A stretch of 64,000 nucleotides of DNA from Ophelia neglecta (taxonomy: Eukaryota). The translations under genes and the position numbers were made by a program. The notes under the pieces are model-generated. The model searched no databases. It saw nothing but the letters and a program-made list of their open reading frames with translations, and had not been told where the DNA came from. The stretch covers positions 78,120,001 through 78,184,000 of the forward strand of contig OZ260664.1 in the NCBI GenBank assembly GCA_965285935.1, written 5' to 3'. Positions 2,677 to 34,648 of the stretch are shown one piece after another. How positions within the stretch are numbered: the first letter of the stretch is position 1; every line of letters starts with the position of its first letter.

Positions 2677-5132
2677 TCAATCAAGCTGGGTGAAGAGTTC
2701 CGGCAGTGTGTGTCGGTCCACCTCGTCCATCCTTTGTATCATGTCAATACAATTGGCTACCTGTCGACTGCTTAGCCCGCCAGCCTGCGCGTTGGCAGAG
2801 AACTTCTTTTGGAGGTCGGCATCGCTCAGAGGCAGTCGCCAGTGACCGTATGGTGTCGTGCACTTCGCCGTGTACGAGCTGCCATCGCGTGTCTCTACGC
2901 CAACGCGCACGTACATCCGGTCAAAATTGGGGTCATTATCGGCAGGGGTCACTACTCTGGTGAGATCTAACAAACGACGCAGGGCTGGTCTCTGAATCAT
3001 ATCATCGCTGAATGAACTCGGCTGCACCATACCGTCCAGCAGTGTGACGCATGTGTTGAACTGAAAGCTGTGCCGGGCCGCGTGTTCGTCGACCGGCAGA
3101 GGGCGGTTGACATACTTAGAGTTGGGCGCGTCCACCACAATTTCCCGGATGTCGTCCACGGATAAGGGCCCCTCTCCGCGGACTATATGTCGTCTGACTT
3201 GGGCGGCGGCGTCTGAAGCCCAGTGCATACTGAGATGGGCTGGGATCCGTTTAAAGGCGATGTCCTGTATGTCCAGAGACCAACCACCTCGTGTCTCTTG
3301 TGCATCTTTTACCGAGATTGGATTGTAGTCTCGGAAATAGGCCCCAAAGCCCGCTTGGTTGTCCATGATCTGATCGCTCCCCCTTACTCCTGCGTCAGCG
3401 AGAAGTGCCGCCTCCAGACCGAAACGAGCTGAGTTTCCGGCATGTAGGGGTTTGGCTTTTGTACCAGCGTTGGCCATTGGCGCGCCAGCAAAGGAAGCAG
3501 CAATTGCGAGAGCGTGGCGACATCTCTCGGCATCCAGTCCCAGAAGTTTAGCACAGGCGGCGGCGCTTCCCATCACCCCAACAACGGCGGGAGGGTGGAA
3601 TCTGAATTGAGAAATGGTGTTTAATCAATACACACGACCAGTTCCAATTAACTAACCTCGAACTGTGACTCAAGTTAAGAACTAGTATGATTTATCAATT
3701 AACTTTATTAATAGACCTATCATTTTCACCAATACAAATATACATTCATGTTTTTTCTTATTAGAATATCACGTTTTAATCTAAGAATAAATTATAGTTT
3801 CACAGCACCCTCTGTTAGTAGTATAACATAGTTTGCCTTACCTGTTTGGTATTTGCTGAGCATTCTGAGAGAAACGAAGTAGTAGTCCTTGCACTTCGAT
3901 TCCGATGTTGTAGGCGAGTAGTATATCAGCGCCGGACACCCGGTACTTGCCTGGCATGGCCTCGGCCAGAGCCAGAATGGCGGGCAGCACGGGTCCGCTC
4001 GGGTGGGTCGCTGGGTGCCAGGTGTCGTCGAAATCCATAGCGTGGGTCATTACGCCGTTAGCGAAGGTAGCGCCGATCAGGGAGCTGCGGGGCGGGCTGG
4101 GTTGAGAGCGGCCCCACAGGGTACAGGCCGACCCCAGCTGGGACTGGCCGCCTCCCCCCAGTAGAGCGGCATGCTCCACCGCAGTCCGGGCTATCTCGGT
4201 GGTGCTCCCGATAAGCCCCACACCCAAACTGTCCAGCATCATCCGCTTACTTCGTTTTAACACCGTGCCAGAGATATCAGACAGACTGGCGCCGGCTACG
4301 AAGTCTCCAAAAGAAGTAGTCACATTTTCTTTTAAGACATTCACTGGCTCTGCTGTCCCTGGGAAAAGACGAAGAATATCAGCACGTTCAGCAGTCTGTA
4401 TATATAAGAATCGTTCTAACTAGAAAGTATAATCACTGGACTATGTTTAGTTTAAATCATTATTTTGTTCTTACTTACGTTGTGTAACTCTGGGGTTTCT
4501 TGATACCTCTACCCCCCCCCCCCTCCACACACACACACACCTACCTACAAACCCACCTCTATGGGTCCCCTCTCTTCGGGTTACCCGGTAAAACATTGTC
4601 TATTGAGTCTTACCTTCTGCCGATTGTTGTTGTGCCATAGGAGCCGTACTGTGTTGTCGATGTGACTCAATTTCTGGCGTGGTGACAGTGTGTTTCTCTC
4701 GGGCGGGAGATGCGATCATCTGGGTCCTGTGCCCAGTACATAATGTCGTTTTCTCAGCCAACTACAAAAGGTAAATGGGTCACACTTATATAAATCAATA
4801 ACAACTATGCCTATAGCTATCGCAATTATATTTTGTATAAGGCATTCGGGAACCAAAGGGAGCCTTTAGACATGAATTTCCGCGCGACTGTCTCAGCGAT
4901 CCTTTATTTTGCCACGCAAATTTCATAGTATACAGTTTCGACGTATTATATCCAAATAAAATCAAAAAATAAACAATTCGGCAGGTTTTATCGTCCAACA
5001 ACTGTGATTGCTTTAAAACAGAAAAACTGTTCTCCAATTTAACTTTTCAAAAAAGGACATGACACAGAAAATTACAAAATAGCTAAAATAAGAAATAGAA
5101 ATTTGTTTTACCTTCTTCGCGGAGCGGAGCAT
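2677..5132 (-). CDS. ACOD1: cis-aconitate decarboxylase (IRG1/ACOD1, MmgE/PrpD family), about 536 aa, 4 exons
   Basis: Exons 5132-5112, 4761-4614, 4358-3842 and 3601-2677 have GT-AG introns with consistent phases (1611 nt total). Motifs RSKRMMLDSLGVG, AMDFDDTWHPATHPSG, RFHPPAVVG (across a splice junction), AKPLHAG, FKRIPAHLSMHW, SKYVNRP and ARHSFQF cover the IRG1 active-site residues D93/T97/H103/H159/K207/K272/H277/Y318 (human numbering). Confidence 0.93.
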
Positions 5133-5310
5133 GTTGGTTTTCAATAATATATTTCGCTGCATTCTTTCCCTGGTTGAGCGTCAACTGGCAATATACAAAA
5201 TAACAAATAGATAGCGTGACTGTTTACACTTTCGAAGATCTGTTTAGCAAATCAAATCAGTTGGCAGAATACCGACTAATTTCAGAATGCCTGTGCTCGG
5301 AGAAGCTTGC

Positions 5311-5424
5311 TTATTTATATGAATCTGAGCAGATTACATGCGCATGATTTTTGAGGTATATGTGACGCAAACAATGAGTTCTAAATAATTGTTGATTACA
5401 CTGAACATCCGATAGGGGAAAACC
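5311..5424 (-). promoter_or_regulatory. Putative ACOD1 core promoter: TATA box, bZIP site and kappaB-like site
   Basis: TATAAATA on the minus strand at 5312-5319, about 180 nt upstream of the ATG; TGACGCAA at 5363-5370; GGGGAAAACC at 5415-5424. Motif matches only. Confidence 0.45.
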
Positions 5425-6131
5425 TGCAATTGCTCCGTGGCCAAATTGAGCCTACATCCTGGTTCCAAAAGTGAACCATCTTTGGAGATGTAGGTAAAGC
5501 CAAATTTAGAAGTTAAATTACCTCATGGGTATAATAAAATATCCCGTTCGTAGTCAGGTGTATGGGAACAGGATCCAGAAGCAGCTCTCTGATTGGACAA
5601 CACAAATAATAGACACACCGCCAAGCTGTCAAGGCAATGCGCTGTGACATGTCGCTGTGACATGTCGCTGTGACCATCCACACGCATAAGAGCGAAAATT
5701 GTTCCGATCTATATGTGAAACATTAGTCATGGTTTTAGTCACTATTGTTTTAAGTAGGACTGTTTTAAATCCCACATCACTCTGTCATCACGCTGACTTA
5801 AATTCTCTCTGTAAACATGTACCTAACATCGACGACACGAGCTTAGAAATTATTCCTGTTGTTGAAATTGTAATAAATTACAACTAAGTGGCCCAGTTGA
5901 ATACGGGAATCACTTGTAACTAACATTGCTGTATAGTGTTACTGCTGGTAAGTCCAATTTCGGTGAACGATTAATATAATATATAGAGTATAGAAATTTA
6001 TTCTGCCGATATCAAACAGTAAACATACATGTATTATGATTGTGAATAACCAATATCTATATAAAGAAGAAAATAATCTAAGGTGAAAACAAATGACACA
6101 TTAAACGACATTAAGATAAAGGAAATTAAAA

Positions 6132-6304
6132 TACCGAGAAACCTGCCTTAACGTGGTATATCGAGACCACCTGTGAATTCAAATCACTAAAATTAAGGCA
6201 AAATACATGTGGTCAATGTAAAATAACCTTTGTAGGCAGACCAGCTCTATTATCAGACCAGTATTTTAAGTCCCTTGGGTGGTCTTAATTCACAGGTTGC
6301 ATTG
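6132..6304. mobile_element. Degenerate MITE, family 1
   Basis: GAAACCTGCCTTAA...AGACCACC...GTCCCTTGGGTGGTCTTAATTCACAGGTT, similar to the 49322-49504 copy. Confidence 0.6.
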
Positions 6305-9300
6305 CTTTTCTGTTAAATGGGCTTCTCATCGGCACATTCTGGAGCAAGAAATGTCACAGACCTATTGTAGCACGGCATATGTTGGACTATGTTAGAATAT
6401 GTTAGATTATGTTAGGTCTTCTTTAGACCTTTTTAACTGATGGTCGCTGACTTTGAAAAACCATCGTTCCATAATAATCAAACAAAATAGGAGTCAGTGG
6501 CTGATTTCCAATACCGTTTGAATTTTGCCCACGTATCTTAATAACAGGTTGGTAAATATATGTCCTTGTCCAGAAGGTGGAGAGCCGTTTACACACCAGT
6601 ATGATTTAACCACTGGCGGGCATTTATAACAGCTGTGATATGATACTATATCGCAGTGCATGTTCTAGGGCAAAGAGTTTTCCTCTAATCGACATTTTAT
6701 TCAGCTTTACTCTTCAAATCATAATTGTTAAAGTAGGCCTATAGGCCTATAAGGTCTATGCCTTGAATATTGATACAGCCCAGGAAACATCAAGTTTTTA
6801 GCCACATGCCAAAAGAATGTGGAGGAGAATTGTCCCTCCAGTACTTAGGCCTACGTGCTTGCCAGTGTGTGATGAAAGGCACAGTTTTGATAGCAATGCC
6901 TATAAAACTATCTGAATATTATCTTAACATTCAAATACCTAATAGATACTGGTCAGCCATGTGCATTGACTAGGCTATTTTATTGTTACTATTTTAATGG
7001 ACTACTTGGTGTCAATATGCGTTGAAGCTTCAAGTATTGCTAACTCGAAAACTGCCCACTTCCATTTTGACCAATAAGACGCCATTGTTGCTGTTAAGTC
7101 CGCTATATCATAAAAACATCCGCTTTTGGACACTGATAAGCAGGAATTCCTTTGTTGTGTCTTCAATGGGCGACTGCATCCGGATTTTTATGGTTGTCAA
7201 AAACAAATCGACGACATTTATACACTGTTATAATTAATTCTAGTGAAAAGAAACCATAACCACAAAGTTTGTTTCCTGCTATGGTCGGCTATGACAAATG
7301 AACTAGGCCTAGCACAGATTATAACCAAGACACCACGATACATCGGGGTGGAATCAAAATGGGGTTGCCTCTTTGCCTCCTTGAACGCATGATCGTTTGT
7401 ATATAACGACCACGCGGTCTTGAATCAGTGTGTTTTCTAAAAGTGTCTCCGGGAGGATGTACCTCTGGAAGTTTTGATGATAATCATTTGCCAATGACCG
7501 GAAATGGCAACCGTCCGAAGCAGGTGACAACTGGGAGAGGGTGGGGGTGGAGCAGGGTGGTAGGGGTGAGGGAGGATTGGTGTGGTGATTGAGGGGTAGA
7601 TTGAGGTGGTGGGGGCGTTATTCTTTCGTTTTCTCGATTTATTAACCTACAGTATCGGAGCTTTTGCTAGAAAAAAAAGAACAAAAGTTTCCCTAGTAAG
7701 ACTCAACGTTGGGAAAAAAACCACTTCAGCAAATGAAAAAACCGTTTAGATTTAAGTGTGGTGATTTTTCATGCTGATATCATATTGTACGTATACTTGA
7801 AATAAATACACTGTCTCAATTTAAAGCCTTAAAAAATAACCCGGTAGTTTGATCAATGTTAGTGATATCAAAAGGCTATGAATTAATAGTTTTTCTCGTG
7901 CTTACATAGCTATATTTCCCATGAAAAAATCGATCCTCATTGATCATAAGAAACAATGATTCTTTATAATTCAAATTCTATTTGACTACTCTAGAGTACA
8001 TTTTGAATAAACTGATATTTTTATGGTAAAGCCCTGTTCAATGTGACTATAAATTACTTAGACTTATATGGTCTAGATACCACACATTGAAAATGAACGG
8101 GCAGGAATTGAGTAAGGCTTAAAGTACTTAATTTATAGCCAAAAGCGATAATTGTTTTTTTAGTGACAAGGCAATATATTCGTGTGCACATGAAGGGCAA
8201 CTATACAGTTCAAATTTTAGATTTGGGGGTTATATATATCGTTCATTTCTCAACTATAAAATGTAACAGATATTAGTTGAGACCTGTTTTATAAGCGGTA
8301 TCTCTCAGGGAAAGCTAGATGTTAAAATGTGTTCAGTTATCACTGTCGATCACGTGAAGTTTATATTTAAATCTTAGTTTAAACAACACCAATAGACATA
8401 TAAGATAGCTATACGGCATAGATACAGGCCTGGGCCAAAATTGAACAGGAAATAGTGATTTGCATTTCTGTAGCTACTGCACGGCAGTGAATAAGGCGGG
8501 GAGATTAATACAGGCGTGCATTGTCAGTTCCTTCAAGCGTGATATACAAGGTTATAGTGGACACATTATTCCATTCTGTATTACAAGAACAATCCAGGAT
8601 AAATGAATCTTTTAAAATAAACTAAAGATTATTCTCCTGTTTATCCTAATCCTAGTCTATTATTGGGAATGTTGCAAGGATTTTCAATAAAATCATGCAG
8701 GGTCTAGTCGGTGAATCGTGATTTGTCCGACAATGTTGAATTGAAATTTATGCTAGCAAGTAGCGCTTACCTGCACACCGACCGCAAAATTGACAAAAAT
8801 TAATGACCCCGTACGCCGATCTAAGGTACTGCCACGGTAAGCAGGGTATGATTTAGCCATATTCCTTGTATTACATAAGATGCCCGCAGGGAGAGAGAGA
8901 GAGAGGCTTATATCTTTAGTGTCTATTTATGATGATAGGTCTGGATTTGCCGGTTATTTTGTTATGCATGACTCCACTCTTACAATATATCATTCAGGTC
9001 ATTTGTTCCACTAATGTGGCGATATATAGACAAATTCAAATGAATATAGATCTCAAAAAAGACCTAAATTAAAGTATTGGAGTAATGGGAATTGTTTGAA
9101 GTTACTCAGTGTCATAAAATGTTCTAAAACTATTTATTTAATGGTTTATATCTAAAGAATCTATTAAGATTTTTGTTGAGGCAATACTTGAATTAGAAAC
9201 CACGCAGTTGAACAGAATCCCAGCTTATCGAACTCAGCAATGGTTACTTTCTTTAATATTCCGCCATAAGGACAACTGATGGTTTATACAGAACGGGGGC

Positions 9301-10649
9301 GTTAGAAGTCGCGATGACAACACGGAAGTAAGTGGTAAAGTCTCTGTCCCTACAGTCCAATCATGATGACTTCCCGCATCAAAATATCTACCACCCCCGT
9401 CTTTTTTAGGCGAGTGTCAGTTTTCATGTTGTTTCACAATATCATTATCGGCCTATGTGTATTCTTTTCTCTCAACCCACACAACTTTTTTCTCAAGCTA
9501 AACACAGCTTCTTGCTGAAAATCAGACGCATAACCCTACGTATGGTATGTAATTGTCTCTCAATATAAATGGTATAAGAGAAGGACTTTCTGAGAAATTA
9601 TTAGTGTTTTCTGTGTAGGAATACCGCTGCAGGGTAAAATATTCATGTTCACATTCTCAGCGATAATAATAATAATAATCAGCGTTATTGCTGGTGTCAA
9701 AAGCCGAAGACGATTACGAATGTATTGGCTGTCTTCCTAATATGGGCTTATGAAGTTTTCAAAATGATATGAACTATTACCTCAAGCACATCATAAAATA
9801 AAAAGTGTGTAAAATGTATAATTACCTGACATCCTACCCTCGTGCTAAAAAGCACGATGGATCTAATACACCAATGAGCGTTGAAAACAACTAACCTTTA
9901 TTATAATTTAAATGTGAAGCCTAGTTCGTTATTATATTAAAATAGTTTAAACCAAGTAGCATTTATACTTAACTTCAGAGTATTTTCATTTTATTCAACA
10001 CTGCTAAAAGTAGATTGTTTACTATAGATTTGCAGATTCAATTACAAAATGTCTAGCAAATAAGCATTAAGATTATGGCGTTGCCTTTTTCTTTCTTTGA
10101 ATATATTTTTAGAAATCTTTGGTAGTTTCGATCTGGACATTACAATCTGCCATGCCTGATCTGCCATGCCTAGTCGACCAAAAGTCCCTTTTTTTATGGT
10201 ATATGTTCATCTTAATAGAAGTTAAGAATGAAAAATAATTAAAATTTTGATCGAAATTAAAAACTATCCTTGTTTTTAAGATCAATATGACCTAATCCGC
10301 CAACTGACCTTATTTTTGTGTGGCGCATAAGGATGTTTCTAGCTAATTATGTACTTAATTAACAGAGAAGTCACACGTTGTTAATGATTAACATGAACAT
10401 TTTATTATTTGCACCAGGCAAATTTTCTCTGTCATACAAAATGGGTGATAATAAATACTTTTACGCTTCGCAACAACATAACTATGTAGTAGATTAATGA
10501 TTATTATAAATAACAGGGCTTAATCTTTCGGTGTTATTAGTCCTTATAGCCAGCAACATGTCGTTTTTACTGAATAAACGAGCAAAACTTTCTACTTCAT
10601 ATGAATCAAAATATTTGAATTATAAGAAAGTAATGGGTTTTATTTGGTT

Positions 10650-13600
10650 TCATCTAGAGAGATGCTCTGAGATCTCTGGCAGAGAGAACATTTCGGTGTT
10701 TATGTCATCTAAGTCAATGTCGTCGAAGGCGGGGTTATTGTATCCCTGCTCAGCGTCCCTGACGTCACCAATGACCTTGACATTGGCGAGGGGCGCGCCG
10801 TCATGGCCGACGATGATGTCTGGACTCAGCTGTGATAGCTGGCGTCTAACTGCCTCGGGAACTATTGTAAGTGGCTCCAGTGTTTTCTTGCCCTGGGTAG
10901 TGACTATTCCCTCTTCTTGCTTAGCCTGTTCAAAATGTTCCAAAACCTTGCTCTTTGGCATGATTCCTATACGAAAGAAGCCAATATCGCCACCTGTAGG
11001 CAGTCGTCTACAGTCAACCACTGTGGAAGCGGCATTTTCAGCAGAGGCGCCATCACACAGCACCCCGTCACACTAAAACAGTGAAGATTTTATTAGAATA
11101 TAATTAGAAAGAAATATTTTTTGTTACTGTTATTAATAAATGGATTCATTTGGGCCAATTTTGGAAACTTTTTATTGATTCAATTTATCTGGTTGGCTTC
11201 ATCTTTATAGGCCTAGGCCCAGGTCCATAACAACCGTAATTTATGTGTAAATTACATGATTAAATTAAAAAACAAACTATAATATGGACTACAAAGCTTT
11301 TGTTTTGAACATGTTTAGTGTGTCTAGTTGACTTACATTTTGTTCTTCGAGTCTGGCGAGGACCTGGGAGTGGTGGGTGGTGTCCGCCTCCCCCGAGGGG
11401 TTAGCCGAGGTGACCGCTATGGGGCCCACCTGGTCTATCAGGTGGGTGGTCACCGTGTAGTCGGGCAGGCGTACAGCTATACTGTCTGGCTTTCCTATAT
11501 ACTTCTCCGACTCACCCAGACCTAATTTTTCCAACCATGGCCCTGCCGGACGGAAATAGATGGGGGACATATTACATTAGTTTGTTGGTACATATATGGT
11601 GTAAATGGCAATAATTTTAATGGTGTATTTGGCCAGCATTGAAATCAAAGGGACATGATCTGATATCAAACTATTGTCCAATACTTCGCATGCATATCAC
11701 AGACAGGGTAAACTATTTAATCCTTGTAAAGTTCGTAAAAATTACCTTTTGGCACGACGAGACTGATAGAGGAGGGCCAGACTTTGTTCAGGAACCTCCA
11801 GAGGAGAGGGCCGAATTCCTGTCGGGCGTGTTCCAGCTGGTCCAGACTGGAGATCCACAGCGACATGGGCCTGTCTCCAGCCTGCTTCTTAGTGTTGTAC
11901 GCTCTCTGGAAACACAAAATTCCCTTACTAAAACCGGATTTTAAACAAGTGAAACGGAAACATCTTAAAATAAAATTTCTCTATATAAAGTGAGGCCAAT
12001 GGATTGAGTTAATATTCTATTTTCCTACTGCTATTTTTGCCGATGTGAATTTCAAGGGGACGTCATTTTGATAAGGAGGATGGCAAGTTTTGCTAACAAT
12101 AAGAAGTACACATCGTATGTTATTTACCTCAACGGCTTTAGGAAATTTGCAGGCGGCAACGAGAACGTAGACAGTATCTGTAGGAATCCCTACAATACCT
12201 CCCGAATTCAATATAGCTGAAAAAAGAATCCACAACTTGATTAAAATCGTTATTTCTATTGGTCAGATGAAAATTCGAATTAAATCCCAACGAGACGAGT
12301 CAGGATCATTCAAAAAACGGTTGGGGGTTTTAGGGAATAGAGAACAACTTAGGAACCAATGCGTAAAGTTGTACAGTCGTTTAGCTTTAGCATAAGATAT
12401 ATAAAACCGACGATTATATTTGCATACAAGTAAATACATATGCACAACTACCTACCAGCTATTTCCGAGACTCCTTTTGCTTTCTTGGAAGGCGCCATTA
12501 CGACCTTGCCGCTCTCATTTGCGCCATAGACCACTTTGATGATGGCTTTGCCGAGAGGAACAAGAGCACTGCCCAGCACAGATTTGGTGGCGGAGCCGAA
12601 AAAGGCGTAAAAGCAGACGACACTCAGGATGACTGTTAGGGCAATACTAGCTCCTTGTGGAGTGGAAGCTCCGCTGGAAACGCATATGACCAAAACTGGG
12701 TTGACTAAAAGCGCCACGGAATAGAAAAACCACACCTTTTGGATAACAAGTGACAGCGCGGCGAGCAAAAGACCGCCTAGAAGAAAGGCAGTAGGGCCCG
12801 CAGCAAGCTGGAAAGATCCACTAGAACTGGCCATTATCGGCCTACCCCACAGGAGCCAAAACATGCTATACATGATGAAACTGCAACTCTGCAATGACTT
12901 CCCGCGAGACAAACAGACACAACCGACGATGAACTGAATCACGCCACCTACAGGGAGTGTCCAAAACATACTACTGACCTGACCCTCCGGCGACAACCAG
13001 AGCACAGATACTGCAGCAATGGCATTAGTGAGGAAACCTACCATTTCTATTTCGCTGTATTTGGAAAAACCAAGAATATCAGATTCAAGTGTTGTGCTTT
13101 GAATTTTATCGGCAGCATTGTTATTGTTCTTGCTGCAACATGTCTTCAAACGATTCACGCCACTGACAATTTCCTTTGAAATGCCATCGTATTTACCTAG
13201 AGGCACCTTGGACGTTTTCAAACTAATAAGTAATGCGTAATGTAAGACACCATAAATAGTAATAAGCATTAAAATCCAGCACATGACAAGGAAAAACATA
13301 CTTTGGTAACCTTGAATGGCAAGGGCAATGGTTAATATAGTATAAACACTGCTTTGAATAATATGAAACAGTGATTCTTTTGCTGAAAGGATAGATGCAA
13401 ACACAAAGCAGACGGCCATGACACTGAGACTGGCTACATTGACGGGGTCGCTGACTCCTGAAATCAAACTCAGGCCACTACAGATCCATAATGAACCATT
13501 AAGCATGAAAAACACCGAGTGGAACGGAGCAATGTACCTCAAAATGGCTACCCACCCCACAAGTGTCATGACGCCAGACGCGATAAATGTCAAAGCAAAC

Positions 13601-14695
13601 GCCTCGTAAGATATAAGATCAGAAGTGCTTAGAAAGAGGGCGGGAAACACCGCTAAGAGTTGGCAGCAATATACAAAGAGTAAAAGATGAGCTGCACTTT
13701 TCTGAGACTGGGGTTGCTTTCCTTTAGGTTTATACTCTTTACTGGCAAATTTGACCTTTGTGAATGCACTTCTGACTGCAACAAACAGGGCTACAAGACT
13801 CAACACGGTGTTAACGGCTGCCGTACTCACTTGGTAGCTAGCCGGGGTGTACAGGCTGACTACAGCCAGGCTCCAAGAGGCCGCCCACAAAAACGAGATC
13901 AAGGCCAAGTCAAAAGCTTTTGCCGCCATGCCAAAGATCATGAAAGCAACAGATACAAATACAGAGAAGGCCAGGGTTGGAAGGAGAGCCAGTGAAGAAT
14001 TGGGCACATTGATGTTGGACGATATAGCAATACCACCCACTCCCAACAGGCTGGCACACAGACAAAGATGAAAGCTGACAAACAAACGGTTTCTAGGATC
14101 TTCATTCGTTCTACGTAATCCTGTGAAGAGAAAAACATACAAGTTGATGACAATATAAAAAGATTGTTGAGCATTAACTGTGAGCCTGCAAATGCCTTAG
14201 AACAAAAGCAAATATCCTTTTTTTAACCATGCGGGTAACTAAGACATGCTTTTATTTTACTACTGACACATTATCAAGGTATATGTTTTGGAGTTAAGTG
14301 ATCAAGTACTGGTAATGTGATGGATACATATCTTACGGTCAAGAGGTACAACAATGATATCTAAACTGATCTATATGTCTTAAATGTTTGCTGAAGAGCA
14401 CGTGATAGACTGTAGTTCGTTATTGGTTCTATCGTTTGATAGAGCTATGTATCTATCACCAGTAGGCTATATGTCGATTGCTTTTAATTTCGTATGCAAT
14501 AGTATTGAATGTATTAAATAAATACGTTAAACACTCACCGAAGAGGAGTTGGACGAGAGCGAGCAGTGCGAGAAGGACGCCGGATTCTAGATTGCTCCAC
14601 ACGTCAGCCAAGCTCCACTGCTGTGCTGCTAGAATGGCCGCAGCCCCCGCCCCGAGGGACACCATCGCCGTGTTCTCAACACTAAGCTGGGCCAT
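10650..14695 (-). CDS. Polytopic membrane protein A: three diverged SatP/GPR1-FUN34-YaaH-like repeats, Sua5/YrdC domain and acidic tail; about 899 aa, 6 exons
   Basis: Exons 14695-14539, 14120-12456, 12216-12128, 11905-11746, 11542-11337 and 11072-10650 have GT-AG introns in phase (2700 nt). YrdC motifs: GIPTDTVY, VWPSSISLV, IAVRLP, TSANPSG, ASTVVD, FRIG. Repeat 3 has PVGGVIQFIVG...SFIMYSMFW and ends LVPLG; repeat 2 ends KVPLG. Confidence 0.85.
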
Positions 14696-16146
14696 CTTAG
14701 ATCAAATGTCTCTATGGTGTTGTCTCTTTAATCGTAAGTAATATCTTGACTTCTCAAAGATATGCGGAAAACTGAGCTATGGATCTGGGTAAAGTAATTT
14801 ATATCAACTTAGAACCGGGTGCGGGAATTTCATCGTGGTTATCTTGGTTTCCGGAATTGCGCTTGGTGCTCACAGGCACGCGTCCAATGTTAACGCGCTG
14901 TGTTTAAAATACGGAATTCCCGTGTAGCTGACACACGGTCGCCCTGACATAGCGAGCCGGACTAGTTTATTTCACCTATTCAGGTATCTATACGGACGAG
15001 TAAACATAGTGAATGTCGCGTACCTTCAAATCAACAGGACATGCTTAGGAGTCAGGCGCACATTGGCCAGCGACCAATCAGAGACAGCATACACCTTCAT
15101 TGAGAAATCCCTACCTTTGACAAGTGCGTCAACGCACGACTAAATAAACTGGCCCTGAACAGCAAGGCTATAATTTATTTACGAGTTCATTACATCTGTT
15201 GGCATGCGTGTTTGTATATTTTGGTTGCTTCCTGCTGTTTAGCATTGGAGTGATTGGGAAATTGATGAATAAGACTCCCGCTATAGACCGCCGTGACTGT
15301 AGTAATGTTCAGGGTAATCCCGAGTCTCCCGTCATCCGTGGGCTGGTGACTTGCTCAGACACACAGCACAATAAATAAAAGTCGGTGGGAACAAATCATC
15401 TCATATCTTTGGCAGAAGTCATTGAGACAGGACGAGAGACAGAAACAAGTCAAATAATTATAAGCAGGCTTACTGAAGGAGCTTATATCTCCCTAGTTCG
15501 ATTGTTTAAGCTGCGTGTTTAACTCATTTTACGACCTATTAGAAAATACTGAGGGTCATATCACATAAGGACAGAACATAATTAGGTAAGATTAGCGTAT
15601 GTATTTTTGGTTTTATTTTCAGATTTATGTTGCTAATTTATACTTTTATATAGTCATCGAAATTCAGAATTTGTTCACGATGCTCCTTTGTGTTATTATG
15701 GTTTTCTTCAATCATTTTTTTGTCGAAATTTAAGAGGAGTTTAATCACAGACGCGTGTATTCTAACCACTTTATCGTTTAATGCTTGCTTTCAAATGTAA
15801 AGAACATATTTCCTACATGTTATGTCCATGTAACGAAGAAAGTTTTAAGCACAGCCAATTGTGACTTTTTTACTTGAACCAGCCCTTCGAATTTTATCAG
15901 TAGCCATTCTTATAATGAATTGGAATAAACGAATAATGCTGTGTGTTTTTAGCAAGATGCATTATCGCTTCTTTCTTTTATTTTGTATAGCAACTTATCC
16001 GTGTAGAAGTATGTGTTACTTATATAAAGGCACACCAGGCGTACAATTTAAAGCTACATCTTTGTGCCTATACTTATCAATTTAGTTTATCTTTACCCGT
16101 CTTCTGATTGATTGTTTCAGATTAACTGTCATCGCTATAATTGAAA
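14696..16146. promoter_or_regulatory. Shared bidirectional promoter region of the two channel-YrdC paralogues, including the 5'UTR intron of gene B
   Basis: Head-to-head ATGs 1.45 kb apart. Minus-strand TATAAAT at 14797-14803; kappaB-like 10-mers at 14823, 14912, 15102 and 15312; CCAAT boxes near 15060-15080; UTR splice donor AG|GTAAG near 15585 and acceptor TTTCAG at 16120. Confidence 0.55.
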
Positions 16147-19100
16147 ATGTCCGGTGTAGATTCTGACGGTAATCGGGCGTTTGCCGCCATCTTGTATGCC
16201 GAGCCTGGCTCCCTCGGCTTACTGGCCAATGTCCTCTCAGCCTTCGTGGTGGCCATGCAGAACTTCCTCCCAGGAACTGACATGGAGCCTGCAGCATACC
16301 TCATGGCTGGTAGGTTCATTGTATAGTCGTCATGTGCCCTATCATTTTACTTACAATATACGTCGTATAGATGGGTTGCCGAATTTATCACTTTTCGTGA
16401 GTTTGCATTTGCCGCTTGCAGTAGAACGCTTACGTCACTGCATTGGACGTCATAACGGCAATCCAGCCAATTGGCGCCGCGCGGAGTGACATCCGAACGG
16501 AATCTCCATAACAACAGTATCCAATGCAGTGACGTACGCGTTATACTGCAAGCGGCAAATGCAAACTCATGAAAAGCGATAAATTCGGCGACCCATCTAT
16601 ACGACGTATATTGTAAGTAACGTACACTTGCCGCCTTAACAGACACCGCTTGTCAATGTCTTAACCATTCGGGTATTTTTGTAAATGTACTCCTCTTCCA
16701 AAATAATATTGACTTATATATAATTAACATTTATATTCGAAACTTTTCCGAATTTGTACACGCGCTTTAAAGCTTTGTATTTTGTAATACAGATACTTTA
16801 CAACGTATAAATATAAATAACAATATTATCAAATACTAAGCTTTGAATCTGAACTGTATATATATAGTTATACCTACAAACAATTTGTGTACGTCTGTAT
16901 TGGAGTGTAGACTTGTTTCCGCTTCCAGGGAAATGGTTAGTTTGTCTCCGCTCTGTCTAAAACTGAAATAATTAAACTATTTTGATCTATTTCAGGTTTC
17001 CATTTAATACTGATCGGAGGAGTCGTTCAGCTGATTGCCGGCTTCCTGTCCTTTCGTAGAAACGATCATCTCAGTGGCACCGCTTTCCTCAGCTTTGCCG
17101 CCCTATGGACAGCTCAGGGCATCTTGAAGGTGCTGACGCCCCAGTTTGCCGCCAATCTCTGGTTTCGCCCGTCCGTTCTGACGGGAATGGTGGGGTTCTG
17201 TGTTGTTGCTGTGGTTCTATTCGGAGCGGGACTGACCGTAAACTACCTCATGCCACCTGTTTTGGTCGCCATGTTTATTAGCTTGGTATTCGAGTCTGTT
17301 GGGTTGTATTATCCTTGGGCTTTGTATGTTGCTGGTGCTTTCGAGATGTTAATCGTCATTGCTGGCATTTACGGCGCATGCGCGTCCATGCTGCGCGGTA
17401 TCTCCCAAAGATATGTATGGCCGGGATTTGGCAACGCCCTGGTGAACGTTCTGCTAATTAAAACTAAGACTGCCCCTAGATCAAAGATGGAGGTGAAAAA
17501 GAACACGAAATATGCTGAACCCATGGCTTTGGGATACTTATGTAATCTGATTCCCTCCGCCATTTTGGCTTTTTACAGTTTGGGCTTTGCTTCTGCTTAC
17601 CAGCTGAGTTTTGTCTGGGTACTGGCTGTCCTGCCCTGTCAGATGTTTGCCAGTTTCTACGCCTACCTCCGTGACGACATGTATCACGCTGCGACCTTCA
17701 TGTCCTACCTGGCCGTCTGGCTCGGGAAACTTGGAACGGAATTCATTTTCGCCCCAAACCCTATTTTCACCCCTGCTGTGGAATGGACGCCATCTTTGTT
17801 TGGAGTCTGGGCCATGTTCTTTGTAATGGTTGTCATCACCATTGTCTCCCTTTCGAGAGACGTTGTGTCTTTTGTCGTAAACCTTTCGTTTCTAGTCCTG
17901 CTGGTCCTCGGGTACGAGTCCATTCCTTCCCCTGTGTACGGTTATACGTTTGGTGTGGCTAACGTCATCGTTTTCTGTGTGTCGTCTTACGCAGCTGTCA
18001 GTTCTCTCATCAACTCCATCGCCGAGAAGCCTGTTATCCCAGTGGGCTGGGAAATTGTCTCCCTAGATTCATTAGTCACTGGGCTCCTCAAGCTACGGTG
18101 CATGACTACCGAACAGTAAGTACATTGTCCTGCACCTGTATTTGTGAATCATCAGATCTTTGTTCATCTACTCAGCAACTCAATCCATTGAACTATGATA
18201 AAAAATTATCGTTTCTTTTTATTCCAGGCTAAACAAACATGTGAAAACCAAATCAGAGATACCACAGGTTCTTTCGCTGACCTCTCTTGCGGTTTGCTCG
18301 CTATATGGCGCCACCTGCGATGTCACTTCCGGCTATGCCGCTTTGTCTTGGATACTGGGCAGTGGCGTCATCCTACAATTGTACGCAGCTCGTTGCGCCT
18401 ATGGAAGCGGAAATATGACTCGGACCTACATTTCGTCGGTGTTCGCATTATTCTGGGCAGCATGGGCTTACAAAATCATAACGGGTAAGCGAGAAAGACA
18501 TTACTTTCCGCATTGAACGGTTATCAACTCATGATCTCTTAATCATCATGATTGAAATTGGTACATGTTTAATCGTCCTGCTTTTTTTTGCCTTCCAGGC
18601 GCTGCCACCCCTTTAATGACGTCAGTTATTCTTGTTGTCCTCGGTGCCTTTGTCGTATTTGCCTCCGCGGCGTTCTCTGTCGTCTGGCTTTTGACCTCCC
18701 TCCTCATGGAGTTAAATATCGTCTGTCTTTTGATTATGTCTATTGGCGTGTACCCACAATACCTCGCGCTAGTCTCCATGATGGGTACAAGTAAGTTTAC
18801 CTTACTGTTTCGTATTTCAGCAATAAAATTGAAAGGCTTCTGTTGTACATTTTTCTTGTTGACCACACCTTTTGCCATCTAACCCCATATTAAAATGTTC
18901 CAATCCATATTGCCTCAATTTTAGGGAATTTCTAACACTGTGTTTCCGCTTTGCAGGTTTTGTAGCATTTTATGGAGCCGTTGCACTGTTCCTTAACTCT
19001 ACATGTGACCTTGACATTCTCCCAATCGGATCCCCCATTTTCGCTGTAAGTAGACAATCCCTATAGGCCTACCTTTATACGTCGTCTGACCTGGCTATTT

Positions 19101-20587
19101 TTGTATACGAGCAAAAGGTTCAGCTTTTACCACCCCCAGTCGTAATCTGACTCCAGTAGACTTAATATAAGTAGAATTTTAAGTGAAACACTGCTGCAGG
19201 AAAGGCGGATTATAGTTCGTAAGTAGAATTTTCAACTTTAAACCAATTTTTTATATATATATCTACAGATCAAGAGTAAGATGTTGGCCAGAAAGCAAGA
19301 GGCCGAGACGGCTAGCCCTCCATGCCCCTTGTACTCGTCTAATCTGACCAGCGGTCTGAGGGGCATGGCCGACCTCCTCGACCAGGGAGCAGTCACCGGC
19401 ATACCAACCGACACCGTGTACGCGCTGGCCGCCAGCTGTAAACACCCGGACAGCATCGAGCGTCTGTACAAGATCAAAGAACGTCCGGCCGAGAAACCCA
19501 TCTGTCTCTGTCTCAGCTCCCTAGAGCAGCTCAAGGATACTAACCCCGATTTCAGCCCGCTGCTCTGGCGCTTCATGAGGAACTGTTACCCAGGCGGTAT
19601 CAGCTGTGTGGTACCTAAAGGGGAGTGGCTGAAGAGACTGGGTGTAGGAGAGGCGGCTAGCTATGTAGGCACCCCGGCCAGCGTCTGTATCCGGGTACCA
19701 GACAGCACTGTTGTAAGCCACCTAGTGGCTATGACCGGCCCTATCGCCATCACGTCCGCCAACCCCAGTGGCGAGCCAGATAGCACACACCACGATATGG
19801 TCATTGACCGGCTAGGTAAGCTTTTTATTTCTTTAAAATTTGCACTAAATTGAGAGGCTACTCGGGAGCAGTTTTTTCTTATCCCATATCTTATTGCAAA
19901 TTATCTTGAAAAACAAGATGTTTATACAAGAGAAAGTCCATACGAACGTAAAGAGCATGCAGAGAGGATATTTCGTCAAAGAATACTAGAATATTGTATT
20001 ATTTCACCACCATTAGTACATATATCTTCCAAAATCTTTAAGGTTTAAAAACAATACGTACGATATAATTTCCTATGTATTCATTTGATGTTTGCTTAAC
20101 CAGGACACAAACTTGGAGGTGTTTTATGTGACGGGCCCTCTAACCACAGTGTCGCTTCTACTGTGGTCAGCTGTGCCAAGATAGATGAAGGTACGTGCCC
20201 ACACTTACACAGTTACACACGTATATCAAAAAATCATATCACCCTACATGTAAATTAACTACATGTATAACAGAAGCCTGTTTTTGAACACTTATATTGA
20301 TGAATCTAACTTCATTGAATTCAACCGTAAAAAAGCCTTTCAGAGACCATGGTATATTATTTTAAAACGTGTATACCCTATTTTTAACCTTAGAATAACT
20401 TGAATTTTGCAATCAATGCTTAATGCACTGTCTTGTAACAAGTACATAACTATGGCCCTAGTTGATTGTAAAATTGACTTTTTCAGGGGTGCTGACTTAC
20501 TTCCGCATCGGCTGTGTGCCAAAGGAAGTTGTCGAGGCTGTGTTCGAGAAAACAAAAAGAGAAATGGCAGCCGACGCCGCCGCCTAA
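16147..20587 (+). CDS. Polytopic membrane protein B: three SatP/GPR1-FUN34-YaaH-like repeats and Sua5/YrdC (threonylcarbamoyl-AMP synthase-like) domain; about 851 aa, 8 exons
   Basis: Exons 16147-16309, 16996-18115, 18228-18484, 18599-18790 (alternative donor 18784), 18957-19045, 19269-19815, 20104-20190 and 20487-20587 are in phase (2556 nt). SatP-like motifs: AEPGSLGL, IGGVVQLIAGFLSFRRNDHLSGTAFLSFAALW, AEPMALGY, INSIAEKPVIPVG, FYGAVALFLNSTCDLDILPIG. YrdC motifs: PTDTVYAL, KERPAEKPI, YPGGIS, IRVP, TSANPSG, ASTVV, FRIG. Confidence 0.88.
16347..16620. mobile_element. Foldback MITE with about 100-bp inverted repeats in the first coding intron of gene B
   Basis: TTACTTACAATATACGTCGTATAGATGGG...CACTGCATTGG is mirrored by CCAATGCAGTG...CCCATCTATACGACGTATATTGTAAGTAA. 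Confidence 0.85.
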
Positions 20588-21551
20588 AATATTTGCGACA
20601 AACTTTTACTGACAATTAACCGCATTAAAAACGTTGGTTGAATTATGCAAAAGCAAAGTGAGGCAATCTAATGTGGACTCCACCCTCCCAGACGAAAAGG
20701 CGCAGTGTACAATTTTGATGCCGGCAGTTTACGACGAAAGAATCGCATCAAATGACTTTAATGCTGAATTTGAAGTATTGAATACAGACTTACAGTTGTA
20801 TTTTATCGAGATGTAATATCGTGTGCAAAAGTCTTATAGGCCTATGAAAGCATTTTTACGCTGGTCGTAAAAATATGTTATCAATTTTTGTATTTCATTA
20901 AGTTATTAATTATTAATTCATCCATTCATCACGTATGAGAGCATACTGGAGTAAAAAAATATGTTATGCAGTCCTAATCTTGTTTGCCAATGACGTAAAA
21001 CCATATTTATTATAATATATACATGTGCCAAATGCTTTAAATAGATATTTACCTTAAAACGCATAGCACATTTCTAAAGTTTACTGCAATCTACTGTATT
21101 AAACTTTAATTTTACATTATGTATGAGGAAAAAGACTATGTATTTGGGTACTTAGCGAAAACTGTGAACCAAATAAACAAGTTTATTTATTAAACTTGCC
21201 TTTTTTATGAATAGAAGTACATATTAGGCTGTCGAGAGTCATCCTACCTGAAAGCAAAATGTCTTCAATTTCCTTAAACAGTTAAATCATTAACCCAGCA
21301 CGTAGACGCATACTAGATTTTAATGTTAACTTTCCCTGGCTATGATTTATTTATTACTCAAAACTCCCGTGGGGTATGAATCACAATTTGGATATAAATG
21401 GAAAATAATCAGTGAATATCATAGTAATTTACTAGAAACTAACTAAAACACAAGCAATAAAAAAAATAAGCATACAAAAATCAATCAAAAACATTTTAAT
21501 TGCAATAAAAGAAACGATAATGACCACTATCATTTTAAAATCACCTTAGTA

Positions 21552-25689: not shown

Positions 25690-25918
25690 TGTTGTGATAC
25701 TACTTCAGTATTATAATTACCAGGACTACTTACCTTAGTATGCCTTGATGCAGTATGTTGCATTATATACTACTTACCATCAGAACATCACCTACCTTGT
25801 AATGCGCATGCGTGCATAATAAATAACAGCTCTCGGCATCATCAAGCGTCTTCGTTACGTCTCGAATAACAATCTATAATAGCTACCACAGTGTTTAGAA
25901 CCCATAAACATCACGACA
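25690..25918 (+). repeat. 5' LTR
   Basis: Direct repeat of 30255-30483 with no differences found by eye. Confidence 0.95.
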
Positions 25919-26087
25919 TGGTGTCAGATGCGGAATCAAGACAAGGCTAGTGACAACTTTATTTCGTGGAACAGCCACCCAGGGCTACAATACGGTGAAA
26001 TTCTACGACTAGTACAGTGACGTCATCGTCAGCTCTGACAGCTTGGCTCTACGCATAAATTAACCTACTATTTTGACAACTACAACA

Positions 26088-29000
26088 ATGGCGGAACTTA
26101 CCGGCATTCCCGTGCCTTCTATGGACTGGCAGTCAACCAATTTACCGGAGGTTTTTCGGAGGTTTAAACAGACATGTCAATACATCTTCGACGGACCATT
26201 AGCTGACAAAAACGAGGAAATAAAGGTACAGTACCTTATGTTATGGATAGGCGAAGAAGGCCGTGACATCCGCGAAACATGGAATTTAAATGCTGATGAC
26301 AAGAAAAAACTTAATATCCATTGGGAGAAAATAGAAGCATATGTCAAGCCCAAATCTAACTTTCGTGTAGCACGATTTAGACTTAGAGCTCTAAGACAAG
26401 AGGAAGGGGAGTCAGTAGACGCTTTTATGACGAAGGCACGACTTCTAGCTTCAGAATGTAACTTTACAGACACCGACGAACAGCTCCTAGAAACTCTCAT
26501 TGCTGGCATACACAATGAAGATGTTCAAAGGAAACTCATATCTAAGGATGACACATTGACACTTCACCAAGCATTGACGCTCGTGAGGACATATGAGGCT
26601 ACACAGAACCAAATGAATGACATTCAAGGGACTAAACATGTTCAAGCACTGAACAGAAATTACAGAGGCCGTCAGAAAAATAAGTACTATGTCAAACCCC
26701 CAGTACAAAAGGGCAAATGTTGGAATTGTGGAGGTGAACACCCCCGTGACTCTAAATGTCCAGCAGAGCATGACAGATGTGACTTCTGCACCAAGGTCGG
26801 ACATTGGGCTAAGGTATGTTTAATGAAACAAAATTCACAGAATACCGATAATGACAACAACCCATATAACCATAAGACACGATCCAGGACAGGTGATAAA
26901 CAAAACTACAAGTCACGACAAGGCAAAAAAGTACACACCCTTAACGATGATCAGAGTGACAATGATGATATTTCACAGGCTTCCAATGACATGGGAGAAT
27001 TCACGTTTGACACAATTGAAACTATCTACAAACAAGGCCACAATGATCAGGCATTTGCAAACATAAATATTGTGACAGATAGGGGTGTTTACAGTGTCAA
27101 GTGTAAAATCGATACCGGAGCACAATCAAACGTTATGCCACTCAGAGTATACAAACTCTTATTCCCGCAAAACATTGACAGAGGAAGACCAAACAATTTA
27201 CAATCAAGTAGCGAGAAATTGAGAGCTTATGGTGGAAACGAAATAAAACAATATGGTAAATGTCAATTACCATGTTCACACAAAAACAAGAAATTACTGC
27301 TTGATTTCTACGTAACAGAAGCTACAGGAAACACAATGCTAGGACTTCGGTCAAGCATAGACATAGGACTTGTTACACTGAACTGCGAAAGCAAAGACAG
27401 CTGTGAGCAGTGCCATGACAAAAGCCAAATACATTCAGTAGGACTTGTCTCTGATAAACCGAAACAGGAATTGATTGACAAATATCCAGACTGTTTCAAA
27501 GGGGTTGGATTGTTTCCAGGTAAATATCGAATAGAACTCAGGCCAGATGCAGAATCTGTCATTCACCCACCGAGGCGGGTACCAGAAGCTCTAAAAGACA
27601 AGCTGAAAGTCGAACTTGATAGAATGGAAAACATGGACATAATTGAAAAGGTCGACTGTCCAACCGACTGGGTCAACAATCTTGTTTACATCACAAAACC
27701 TAACGGGGACCTGCGAATTTGTCTCGATCCAAGAGAACTGAACAAATGGGTCAAACGAGAACACCATTACATGCCAACATTGGACGATATACTACCACAA
27801 TTAACAGATGCGAAAGTGTTTAGCATCATCGATGCTCGATCTGGTTACTGGAACGTCATGCTTGACAAAGATTCTAAACATCTAACAACATTCAACACCC
27901 CATACGGGAGATACTGCTTTAGGCGGCTGCCATTCGGAATAAAGTCGGCGCAGGACATTTTTCAAAAAAAGGTAGACCAGACTTATCAAGGGCTGACAGG
28001 CGTTTGTGGCATTGCCGACGACATCATCGTCCATGGACCAAACAATGAGGCCCATGATGAAAATTTACTTCGCATGATGGATAGAACCAGAGAAGTCGGA
28101 CTGGGCCTCAACCCAGAAAAGTGTGTTATCAAAACAGACCGAATCAAGTTCTTTGGAAATTACTTGTCTGCAAAAGGACTTGAACCAGACCCAGATAAAA
28201 TAGCTGCTATTACAGATATGGAGGCACCCGAGAACCTGACACAGTTACAGACATTCCTTGGGATGGCCAACTACTTAAGCAGATTCACAAACAACTTATC
28301 TGCTTTATCAGAGCCTTTACGCAAGCTAGGAAAACAGGACTCAGACTATCAATGGCATCATGAACACCAACAGGCATTCGAAAAAATGAAGGCAACCATA
28401 TCTTCATCACCTGTACTGAGATACTATGATGCACAAAAGCCAATCACTGTTCAAGTGGACGCGTCAAAACGCGGACTTGGATCTATACTACTACAGGACA
28501 AACAACCTGTGGCTTTCGCAAGTAAAGCCCTCAGTGAGGCAGAATCCAACTACTCCAATATTGAACGTGAGATGCTTGGAGTCGTCTTCGGCTTGAAAAG
28601 ATTTCACCACTATGTATATGGACGGAAGGTCACAGTTGAAACGGATCACAAACCACTGGAAAGTATTACGAAGAAAAGCATTTCTAGCGCCCCTCCACGC
28701 CTCATGCGCATGCTCCTTCAAATACAGCAGTATGACTATGACGTGAAATATGTTCCAGGCAGAGATATTCCCGTGGCCGACGCACTCTCTAGATCTCCAA
28801 CCCAGGGGGAAGAAATGCCTGATATGGATATAACAGTTCATGAACTTGTGAATGTAACTCCTAACAGATTACAACAAATAAAAGCCCTCACCCGTCGAGA
28901 CGAAACTCTACAAAAACTAATCGACACTGTCATGACAGGATGGCCCAACCTGTACAGGGATTGCCCAGTTGAAATCCAGAAATATTGGAACTACCGCGAT

Positions 29001-30176: not shown

Positions 30177-30254
30177 ACTTTATCTTAATCACTTTATTTA
30201 GACTAAGGAACAACATATTAACATTAAATTTAACGTATAACTAAAGAGGAGAGA

Positions 30255-30483
30255 TGTTGTGATACTACTTCAGTATTATAATTACCAGGACTACTTACCT
30301 TAGTATGCCTTGATGCAGTATGTTGCATTATATACTACTTACCATCAGAACATCACCTACCTTGTAATGCGCATGCGTGCATAATAAATAACAGCTCTCG
30401 GCATCATCAAGCGTCTTCGTTACGTCTCGAATAACAATCTATAATAGCTACCACAGTGTTTAGAACCCATAAACATCACGACA
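30255..30483 (+). repeat. 3' LTR
   Basis: Follows the PPT and is followed by the TSD GATGT. Confidence 0.95.
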
Positions 30484-33065: not shown

Positions 33066-34648
33066 TTTGCTACAATTAAGTGAGCAAAAACATATTATCG
33101 ATATTTGTTTTGACATAAATATTAAAAATTTAGTTTATTGAAGATATCTGTTGTTATAGGCTACAGTTTCCACCAGTCAATCACAAACTAAAATCAATTT
33201 TAAGCCGAATTTTCGAATGCGTACCCTAAAAAATATTATGAATAAGCAAATAATTATTACACGAAATTCATTGGAAATAAATAGATATGAATTGATGTCC
33301 GTCTGCATGTTTCAAGTTTGCCGTGACACCAAGTTTTGAAAATATCAAAATAAATGAAAGTGCCAAAAGGACCACAAGTCGAACACTATTGTAGGTTTAT
33401 AATTGAGACGTTTTGAGTCGGACACCTGGTTTTCTACTGAATGGGTGTGTCTAACTTAAAAAGCTATTTTTGTCCATATTGAATGGAATAAGTAACAACT
33501 TTACTTGTTACATTGTCATGGACATAGTTCTTTGCCAACGCATCTTTTGCACAATTGTGCAGGTTTTTCACCTCAACTATCCTTATCACGACGTTAATTT
33601 TGGTTACATATACCTTTATAATGAATTAATTGTTTGAGAATTATCGTACAATTTCAGGGAAGACGGACTTTTTCCCTGAAATTAATCGAGATTGCTATCT
33701 TGCAATACAAAATTAAAAGGTTAGCTAGGAATAATAGAAAAATTCAATAATAACAGTTTTGAATATAAATTAACATGACGAATATGTCTAGGGTAATACA
33801 TTGTTTTATTATGCATGCTAAAGTGCTGGTCACTCCCTGTCTGAATCCATTACGATTTATCGCTCTTCGTAACTAAGGCAATCCATAACACATAACTCGG
33901 TGTATGTGATAAAATACTGGTTAAATTTTATTGATACTGTCACATACATGCAATACAACACCTAAATTAATATAGTGTATTAAAAGCACATTCTTTTGCT
34001 TTCAAAGTATTCGAGATAGAACAAATTCATCACACGTTTTAGAGAACCAGAACGATTTATCATTTTGGTTGCATGTTTCTTGTGCCACATTTACTCAGTA
34101 GGCCCACTGAAATATTGAGTTGTCACAGATATGTTCTTATATCTTTCTTCGTGAATTTCAAACAATGTCTCGTATAATACATAATGCATATTTATTCCTA
34201 TAAATGTGTCAATAAATAACAATTTAGCTCTATATATGTCTTTAGAAATGTAATTAATTTCAACTATAACAATATAAGCGCATAATATTTTATGTAATAT
34301 TTAGCAGCAATTGGTTTGTTTTATGAACATCAAAGATTTAGTACATAGAGCCTTGCTTATACTAGTAACTAATAAGACAGGTATAAGTCTCAAATGTGAT
34401 AATTAAAGAAAGTGCTTGGACAGAGGGCTCTTCTCGTATCCTTTACATTGCCAGAGTGCTGGCACTGCCAGAACCATAAATAAATAAATTATAATGCGCC
34501 CTATTATTAATTAAAAATAAACTGCAATAAACATTATTCATTCCGGAACACTAGCTGGTTGGTTTTTGTCTCGATGCTCTTTTGTACCATTCCGGAGCAT
34601 GATCAAGACGTCACTTCCGGAGAGTAGGACAGTGGCGGAGAACCTTAC

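Follow-up and report, generated by a model that had tools for sequence, protein, structure and literature searches.

Co-regulated gene clusters that group an itaconate-forming enzyme with membrane transporters, and whose function is proven, are known from fungi: cadA-mttA-mfsA in Aspergillus terreus and tad1-adi1-mtt1-itp1-cyp3-rdo1 in Ustilago maydis. The latter also contains enzymes that turn itaconate into derivatives, namely an oxygenase and a putative ring-cleaving dioxygenase. In mammals itaconate travels through ABCG2, MCT1/4, SLC13A3 and mitochondrial carriers, all from unrelated families and not known to be linked to ACOD1, the itaconate synthase gene. Here we analyze a stretch of 64,000 nucleotides from Ophelia neglecta (assembly GCA_965285935.1, contig OZ260664.1, positions 78,120,001 to 78,184,000 of the forward strand; hereafter the window, numbered from its first letter), in which ACOD1, of the type also called paleo-IRG1, lies beside two divergent genes, A and B, each encoding three AceTr (SatP/Ato-like) membrane repeats and a YrdC domain. 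The arrangement resembles the fungal clusters in that an itaconate-forming enzyme is grouped with membrane transporters, here putative ones; it differs in its parts, the fungal clusters having a mitochondrial carrier and an MFS protein and no known YrdC, against AceTr with YrdC here. The mammalian routes would meet the same need, that of bringing itaconate away from the cell or compartment in which it is made.

Two published observations bear on this locus. Ghasemi et al. (iScience 2026) described "vertebrate ATOs" of about 900 amino acids, with three six-helix Gpr1/Fun34/YaaH domains and a C-terminal Sua5/YciO/YrdC domain (PMC13316224). They fall into two clades, are absent from mammals and were proposed to form a six-domain ring from two protomers; protostome sequences within the vertebrate ATO clade were read as possible horizontal transfer, and the text contains the word itaconate zero times and draws no link to IRG1 (PMC13316224). 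Genes A and B share with this family the three AceTr repeats, the C-terminal YrdC domain and the length of about 900 residues (899 and 870 amino acids, respectively). The second source is a preprint on IRG1 (bioRxiv 10.1101/2022.06.17.496652), in which VOC, YrdC, 2OG-Fe(II) oxygenase and GAT genes shared synteny with paleo-IRG1 (pIRG1) and vertebrate IRG1L; IRG1 itself did not take part in this synteny. In the same work zebrafish IRG1L made itaconate, pIRG1 of oyster and amphioxus was immune-induced, and no obvious functionally related clustering was seen among the syntenic genes. The YrdC genes and the 2OG-Fe(II) oxygenase gene PhyH are common to that block and to this window; the preprint left its "YrdC" genes unrecognized as carboxylate-channel fusions and reported no co-expression. 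Our literature search found no paper tying IRG1 or itaconate to the AceTr/Fun34 family. New here are the joining of the two published observations, the probable status of A and B as ancient paralogues and the loss of the catalytic arginine from the A-type YrdC domain. A conserved animal itaconate-linked cluster is, as a joined picture, new in the searchable literature, its pieces being known; the locus is thus less new than the preliminary description of this DNA assumed, because the fusion family and the "YrdC" synteny had each been published separately.

Our favored reading, which we hold to be somewhat more probable than its opposite, is that the window preserves an old bilaterian neighborhood of paleo-IRG1/ACOD1 and the A/B pair of channel-YrdC genes, co-induced and handling itaconate, its precursor or a derivative. 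The genes in question are laid out as follows.

2677-3601, minus strand: last coding exon of ACOD1/paleo-IRG1, with the end of MmgE_PrpD_N and with MmgE_PrpD_C; its stop codon is at 2677-2679, and the sequence shows the acceptor AG at 3603-3602
3842-4358, minus strand: preceding coding exon of ACOD1, MmgE_PrpD_N; splice sites read from the sequence
10650-14695, minus strand: gene A, A-type triple AceTr repeat plus YrdC; six inferred coding exons, 2700 nt, 899 amino acids
14695-14539, 14120-12456, 12216-12128, 11905-11746, 11542-11337 and 11072-10650, minus strand: coding exons of gene A; all introns GT-AG, supported by homologues and structure
16147-20619, plus strand: gene B, B-type triple AceTr repeat plus YrdC; eight inferred coding exons, 2613 nt, 870 amino acids
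16147-16309, 16996-18115, 18228-18484, 18599-18790, 18957-19045, 19269-19815, 20104-20190 and about 20462-20619, plus strand: coding exons of gene B; last acceptor uncertain

The itaconate synthase gene reported in the preliminary description is indeed there. MmgE_PrpD_N and MmgE_PrpD_C were recognized on the two minus-strand exons (Pfam PF03972, 113.6 and 70.9 bits; PF19305, 109 bits), and the closest solved relatives are the cis-aconitate decarboxylases (CAD) of human, for the last exon (E 1e-86), and of mouse, for the exon at 3842-4358 (E 8e-42). The gene is nearer to these proven CADs than to other members of the superfamily, such as IDS-epimerase (1e-18) and PrpD (1.6e-4). The peptide MDFDDTWHPATHPSG in the exon at 3842-4358 is identical to mouse CAD, and the segments RFHPP, KPLH, AFKRxPAH and YVNRPxP are kept as well; we take these conserved segments to be those holding the active-site residues of the human CAD structure. 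As the exon at 3842-4358 opens at an acceptor site and has no in-frame ATG, at least one further 5' coding exon should lie upstream; nothing convincing was found for it in 4359-9400. ACOD1 is present once in the whole 762-Mb genome, and a search made to test an operon origin turned up no bacterial locus with a close relative of the gene.

Genes A and B are divergent and stand head to head, their start codons 1451 bp apart, and the interval between them (14696-16146) is presumed to be a bidirectional promoter. Both appear intact from their sequence. They are the only AceTr-YrdC fusion genes in the genome; the one further YrdC gene, at 29.31 Mb of the window's contig, is most likely the canonical stand-alone YRDC serving the tRNA t6A pathway. 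As far as open reading frames (ORFs) and cross-species tblastx reach, no extra gene was detected between ACOD1 and the pair, as first described. Exons were searched and folded one at a time, never joined, and only their lengths were summed for the A and B models. Intron 1 of gene B holds a MITE-like inverted repeat at 16347-16620, with 101-nt arms that are 95% complementary and spaced by 72 nt.

The YrdC domain attributed to both genes was recovered as PF01300 at the C-terminal end of each, with 108 bits for the gene B exon; three exons of gene A score 37, 24.5 and 24.1 bits. The catalytic motif of TsaC/Sua5/YrdC proteins is K-x-R ... S-x-N. The gene B exon keeps PTDTVY, K-x-R-P (as KERP), SANPSG and STVV, and matches TIGR00057 with E 5e-27; its 94.3 bits lie under the equivalog cut-off of 123.2, the exon covering only part of the domain. 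In the A-type, K-K-(Q/L)-A stands in place of K-x-R in all 10 proteins in which the motif was captured and in three loci, across molluscs, amphioxus and fish; gene A itself has K-K-Q-A, and the position was confirmed by an ungapped HMMER alignment to Sua5. S-x-N is kept in both types (SAN). The A-type YrdC has thus lost the motif arginine in every species examined, while the B-type keeps the full motif.

The classing of homologues as A or B was made on per-exon identities and signature motifs, and one conserved exon block parts the types: SANP(T/S)GEADTTHHxQV in A, SANPSGE(P/A)DS(T/L)HHD(M/R)V in B. This is a rare family: an exhaustive search with the gene A exon returned only 28 representatives among 1.84 billion proteins, and a profile search gave 8 close relatives; every homologue recovered with this exon is A-type. 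B-type orthologues include an 855-aa scallop gene, the first of the amphioxus genes and a cyprinid gene beside irg1l. The named family members come from molluscs, amphioxus and teleosts (the fish gene being si:ch211-153b23.4), and the architecture of three AceTr repeats plus YrdC was also seen in five of the homologues. Both types occur in molluscs, amphioxus and fish, and on this sequence evidence A and B are very probably ancient paralogues whose duplication is older than the protostome-deuterostome split. This differs from the horizontal transfer considered for protostome members (PMC13316224): molluscs have both types, as a conserved head-to-head pair whose synteny extends to fish, and this speaks for vertical descent of the family from the bilaterian ancestor.

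The SatP/Ato-like repeats seen on first reading are present, although their single-exon scores are weak; profile, fold and internal-repeat evidence agree. PF01184 reached 21.9 and 13.9 bits on exons of gene B, queried singly against a gathering cut-off of 25, and did not match the large exon of gene A; the amphioxus orthologue passes the cut-off with 30.7 bits. One gene B exon matches NCBIfam AceTr_1 (E 0.0016), and 29 of the 30 ESM Atlas neighbors of gene B exon 2 are YaaH clusters. A profile of A-type proteins found SatP (5ZUG, E 9.7e-8; 5YS3, E 2.4e-6) and Sua5 (2EQA, E 2.8e-15), and the SatP match recurred with a profile of the membrane part only. The B membrane motifs AEPGSLGL, GGVVQLIAG, FLSFAALW, KYAEPMALGY and RYVxPGFG are common to the window, scallop and cyprinid. 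For membership of the membrane parts in AceTr/SatP, this family-level evidence is decisive.

The AlphaFold model of the large exon of gene A (pLDDT, the predicted local distance difference test, 66) has 16 helices, which with the two of exon 1 make 18, or three sets of six. SatP provided all of the top six Foldseek matches to this model. In the model, repeat 3 (residues 352-524) superposes on SatP with Z 19.4 and an rmsd of 2.7 A over 172 of 182 residues, and repeat 2 (residues 145-300) on the UreI channel with Z 16.4. Repeats 2 and 3 are homologous by hhalign (probability 97.6%, E 1.2e-11); the truncated repeat 1 gave no significant hhalign match to either. Repeat 3 is by far the best conserved: where it aligns with the constriction residues of SatP it has Phe, Tyr and Leu/Val, and it keeps the Gln in GGxxQ. 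It shares with SatP/YaaH (5ZUG, 5YS3) the six-helix fold, GGxxQxxxG, (S/M)Y(G/S)xFW and the C-terminal RxxLPxG. Whereas SatP assembles as a homohexamer of 188-aa monomers, A and B have three units fused in one chain, of which repeats 1 and 2 have diverged strongly, and an enzyme-like domain in addition.

Conservation of the linkage in other genomes, on which the preliminary description had staked its case beforehand, was found across molluscs and in one teleost. The loci recovered read as follows.

Lottia gigantea: PhyH (minus), ACOD1 (plus), A-type (minus), B-type (plus)
Saccostrea echinata: PhyH (minus), ACOD1 (plus), A-type YrdC exon (minus) some 9.8 kb downstream
Patella caerulea: PhyH (minus), ACOD1 (plus)
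Ylistrum balloti (scallop): ACOD1 (plus), 25 kb, A-type (minus), B-type (plus), VOC/glyoxalase; no called gene in the 20 kb fetched of the 25 kb
One ENA contig: ACOD1 (plus), A-type (minus), then exon 1 of B
Liolophura sinensis (chiton): YrdC gene pair, head to head
Onychostoma macrolepis (cyprinid): 877-aa YaaH plus YrdC gene of B-type (minus), 1.8 kb head to head with irg1l (plus), then VOC

The linkage is not a matter of chance, since ACOD1 is single-copy, A and B are the sole fusion genes and the same neighborhood is met in other genomes. Compared with Lottia, ACOD1 is inverted here and PhyH lies on the opposite side; the genes of the neighborhood are rearranged between lineages yet not dispersed. 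VOC/glyoxalase or DJ-1/PfpI genes flank the Ato-YrdC genes of Ylistrum, Onychostoma and Astyanax, and they match the "VOC" and "GAT" labels of the IRG1 preprint; neither was found near the window by exon-level genome search or tblastx. Haliotis had no annotated neighbors within 10 kb of ACOD1.

The preliminary description had also reported kappaB-like sites in both promoter regions as a sign of co-regulation, and this did not hold. The exact motif GGGRNNYYCC is absent from 4345-10650 and from 14696-16147, and the whole window contains 11 copies against 9 expected. With one mismatch allowed, the A/B intergenic region has hits at five distinct places (14823, 14912, 15102, 15312 and 15321), that is 6.2 hits per kb against 2.7 window-wide, a density reached by 12% of equal-sized windows; a single hit, at 9618, was found in the 6.3 kb from the first identified ACOD1 exon to the end of gene A. 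Such a density of one-mismatch hits is nothing out of the ordinary, and kappaB sites therefore give no argument for co-regulation.

Co-induction, the other test named in advance, is documented for irg1l and the si:ch211-153b23.x genes in three published zebrafish data sets. In the heat map of the response to Shigella, irg1l and si:ch211-153b23.4 and.5 are adjacent, and the same list also includes a PHYHD1-like gene (PMC6980646). The hubs of one module from a weighted gene co-expression network analysis are irg1l, si:ch211-153b23.3, si:ch211-153b23.5 and noxo1a (PMC11140123). In a set of 18 exposure conditions, the correlation of irg1l with si:ch211-153b23.4 is r = 0.90, with.3 it is 0.88 and with.5 it is 0.86 (PMC8877790). 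The co-regulated module first proposed therefore keeps the support of its genomic context, because the linkage is conserved and co-induction is documented in zebrafish, and loses that of the kappaB sites.

From this context a mechanism can be proposed. A and B would be transcribed from their shared divergent promoter and induced together with ACOD1. Each chain would act as a pseudo-trimer, and a SatP-like ring of six units would be built from two of them, possibly an A with a B. Repeat 3, with its SatP-like pore residues, would conduct a small carboxylate, which the linkage to ACOD1 makes most likely to be itaconate, its precursor or a derivative. For the YrdC domain a position on the cytosolic, ATP side of the membrane is predicted, because SatP has its ends in the cytoplasm and the helices of each repeat are even in number. 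The B-type YrdC, in which K-x-R and S-x-N are kept, may adenylate the passing carboxylate or a carbamate, and the A-type (Arg to Gln/Leu) may be a regulatory or degenerate partner. A and B are good candidates for moving or modifying itaconate, and the export or activation suggested in the preliminary description is a putative role.

Several points weigh against this reading. We know of no transport or enzyme assay on record for any member of the Ato-YrdC family. YrdC-type domains such as those of TsaC, HypF and TobZ adenylate carbamates, not C-carboxylates such as itaconate. The AlphaFold model of gene B exon 2, built from 3 sequences, is unusably poor (pLDDT 47). Among the loci, the A-type gene of Astyanax adjoins DJ-1/PfpI with no irg1l/ACOD1 within 10 kb, in amphioxus a B-type and an A-type gene stand in tandem, again without an ACOD1 inside 10 kb, and in Argonauta ACOD1 and the A-type gene are on separate contigs. 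The loss of both IRG1L and Ato-YrdC in mammals is not independent evidence, since it could be a single deletion. Microsynteny can outlast through shared cis-regulation without a shared pathway. Moreover, co-induction is not specific to the cluster, because unlinked zebrafish genes follow irg1l equally well, sult5a1 with r = 0.91 (PMC8877790).

The last two points lead to the competitor that survives best, a live possibility that we would nevertheless not expect to prevail: the neighborhood would be a regulatory block only, with shared inflammation or stress promoters and enhancers, and A and B would carry an unrelated solute in an epithelial stress response, such as acetate, lactate, urea or ammonium, or bicarbonate. 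The head-to-head layouts with spacings of 0.5-3.5 kb fit this, as do the unlinked zebrafish genes of the same expression profile, the resemblance of repeat 2 to the urea channel UreI, as close as to SatP, and the absence of a functional relation among syntenic genes in the IRG1 preprint. The AceTr members characterized to date carry acetate, lactate and succinate (PMC13316224; PMC8379382), which fits as well. Against it stands the reshuffling of order and orientation between lineages, after which the genes are still adjacent; that they stay so despite rearrangement argues against simple inertia. In addition, metabolic enzymes are here partnered with a carboxylate channel, as in the fungal pattern of synthase and transporter.

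A quite improbable alternative makes A and B membrane-anchored threonylcarbamoyl-AMP synthases, for t6A or a related carbamoyl-adenylate, the channel supplying bicarbonate/CO2 or threonine and the link to ACOD1 being its release of CO2. It would account for the retention of the YrdC motifs in B with the TIGR00057 match at E 5e-27, and it agrees with "Threonylcarbamoyl-AMP synthase", the automatic UniProt name of family members. However, B stays below the equivalog cut-off of that model (94 vs 123 bits), the motif arginine is gone from the A-type in every species examined, a canonical stand-alone YRDC lies elsewhere in the genome, and the family is missing from most animals, all of which need t6A (PMC13316224). 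That the adjacency is mere chance in this genome and without meaning is barely credible: adjacency in a single genome can always arise randomly and the kappaB argument fails, but the same adjacency is met in at least five further genomes (three molluscs, one ENA contig and one teleost), and the partners are only single-copy or two-copy in 762 Mb.

Returning to an A/B pair that handles itaconate or a relative of it, a bolder version, in our view rather unlikely, would be a bilaterian itaconate-defense cluster of paleo-IRG1/IRG1L, an A/B heterodimer channel, PhyH, VOC and DJ-1/PfpI that makes, modifies and exports itaconate or a derived antimicrobial, and that was lost as a block in therians. 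If this were true, the chemistry of the cluster would be to hydroxylate, lactonise or adenylate, in parallel to the Ustilago route to 2-hydroxyparaconate and itatartarate, and the A/B channel would be a pseudo-hexameric heterodimer in which the YrdC domain of B is catalytic and that of A degenerate. In animals, metabolic gene clusters that are both conserved and co-regulated are a rarity, and itaconate is a central immunometabolite. The locus nominates candidates, namely the Ato-YrdC proteins, PhyH, VOC and DJ-1/PfpI, and zebrafish offers named, infection-responsive orthologues. It also gives the orphan Ato-YrdC family a functional context and explains the "YrdC" synteny that the IRG1 study left uninterpreted.

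Of the further partners, PhyH has left a trace in the window.

34648-35460, minus strand: remnant of a PhyH-type 2OG-Fe(II) oxygenase gene (PF05721, 24.5 bits)

A PhyH gene lies beside ACOD1 in Lottia, Patella and Saccostrea, and this remnant is the only genome-wide match to the ACOD1-adjacent PhyH exon of Lottia (E 2.3e-13), which, being the sole match, marks it as the orthologue. Its reading frame is interrupted by a TAA at 34807-34809, a position that codes for Leu or Val in homologues. Contigs from each of the three DNA runs made on the source sample contain this TAA, and one of these contigs also shows a 1-nt insertion behind 34682. As 5' exons were not detectable in the window either, PhyH is here probably a pseudogene, judging from the sequence.

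Between gene B and the PhyH remnant lies a long terminal repeat (LTR) retrotransposon at 25690-30483, its 229-nt LTRs (25690-25918 and 30255-30483) being 100% identical; it holds an intact gag-pol ORF of 1367 aa on the plus strand (26073-30176) and looks like a very recent insertion. Farther on, an intronless gene at 42494-43183 (plus strand) encodes a CMBL-like dienelactone hydrolase of 229 aa (PF01738, E 3.5e-45), of which the other loci recovered showed none close to the cluster. At 47688-48866 (plus strand) there is a single-exon ORF of 392 aa with an N-terminal hydrophobic stretch and no Pfam match. Finally, the region 58853-63500 (minus strand), with a G+C content of 0.5-0.6, contains a Gln/Pro-rich ORF of 1284 aa with long (Q/A)(M/I)GQPQ repeats and a Cys/His-rich end, probably a low-complexity nuclear regulator; another exon-like ORF with a Cys/His pattern is located at 58853-59176.

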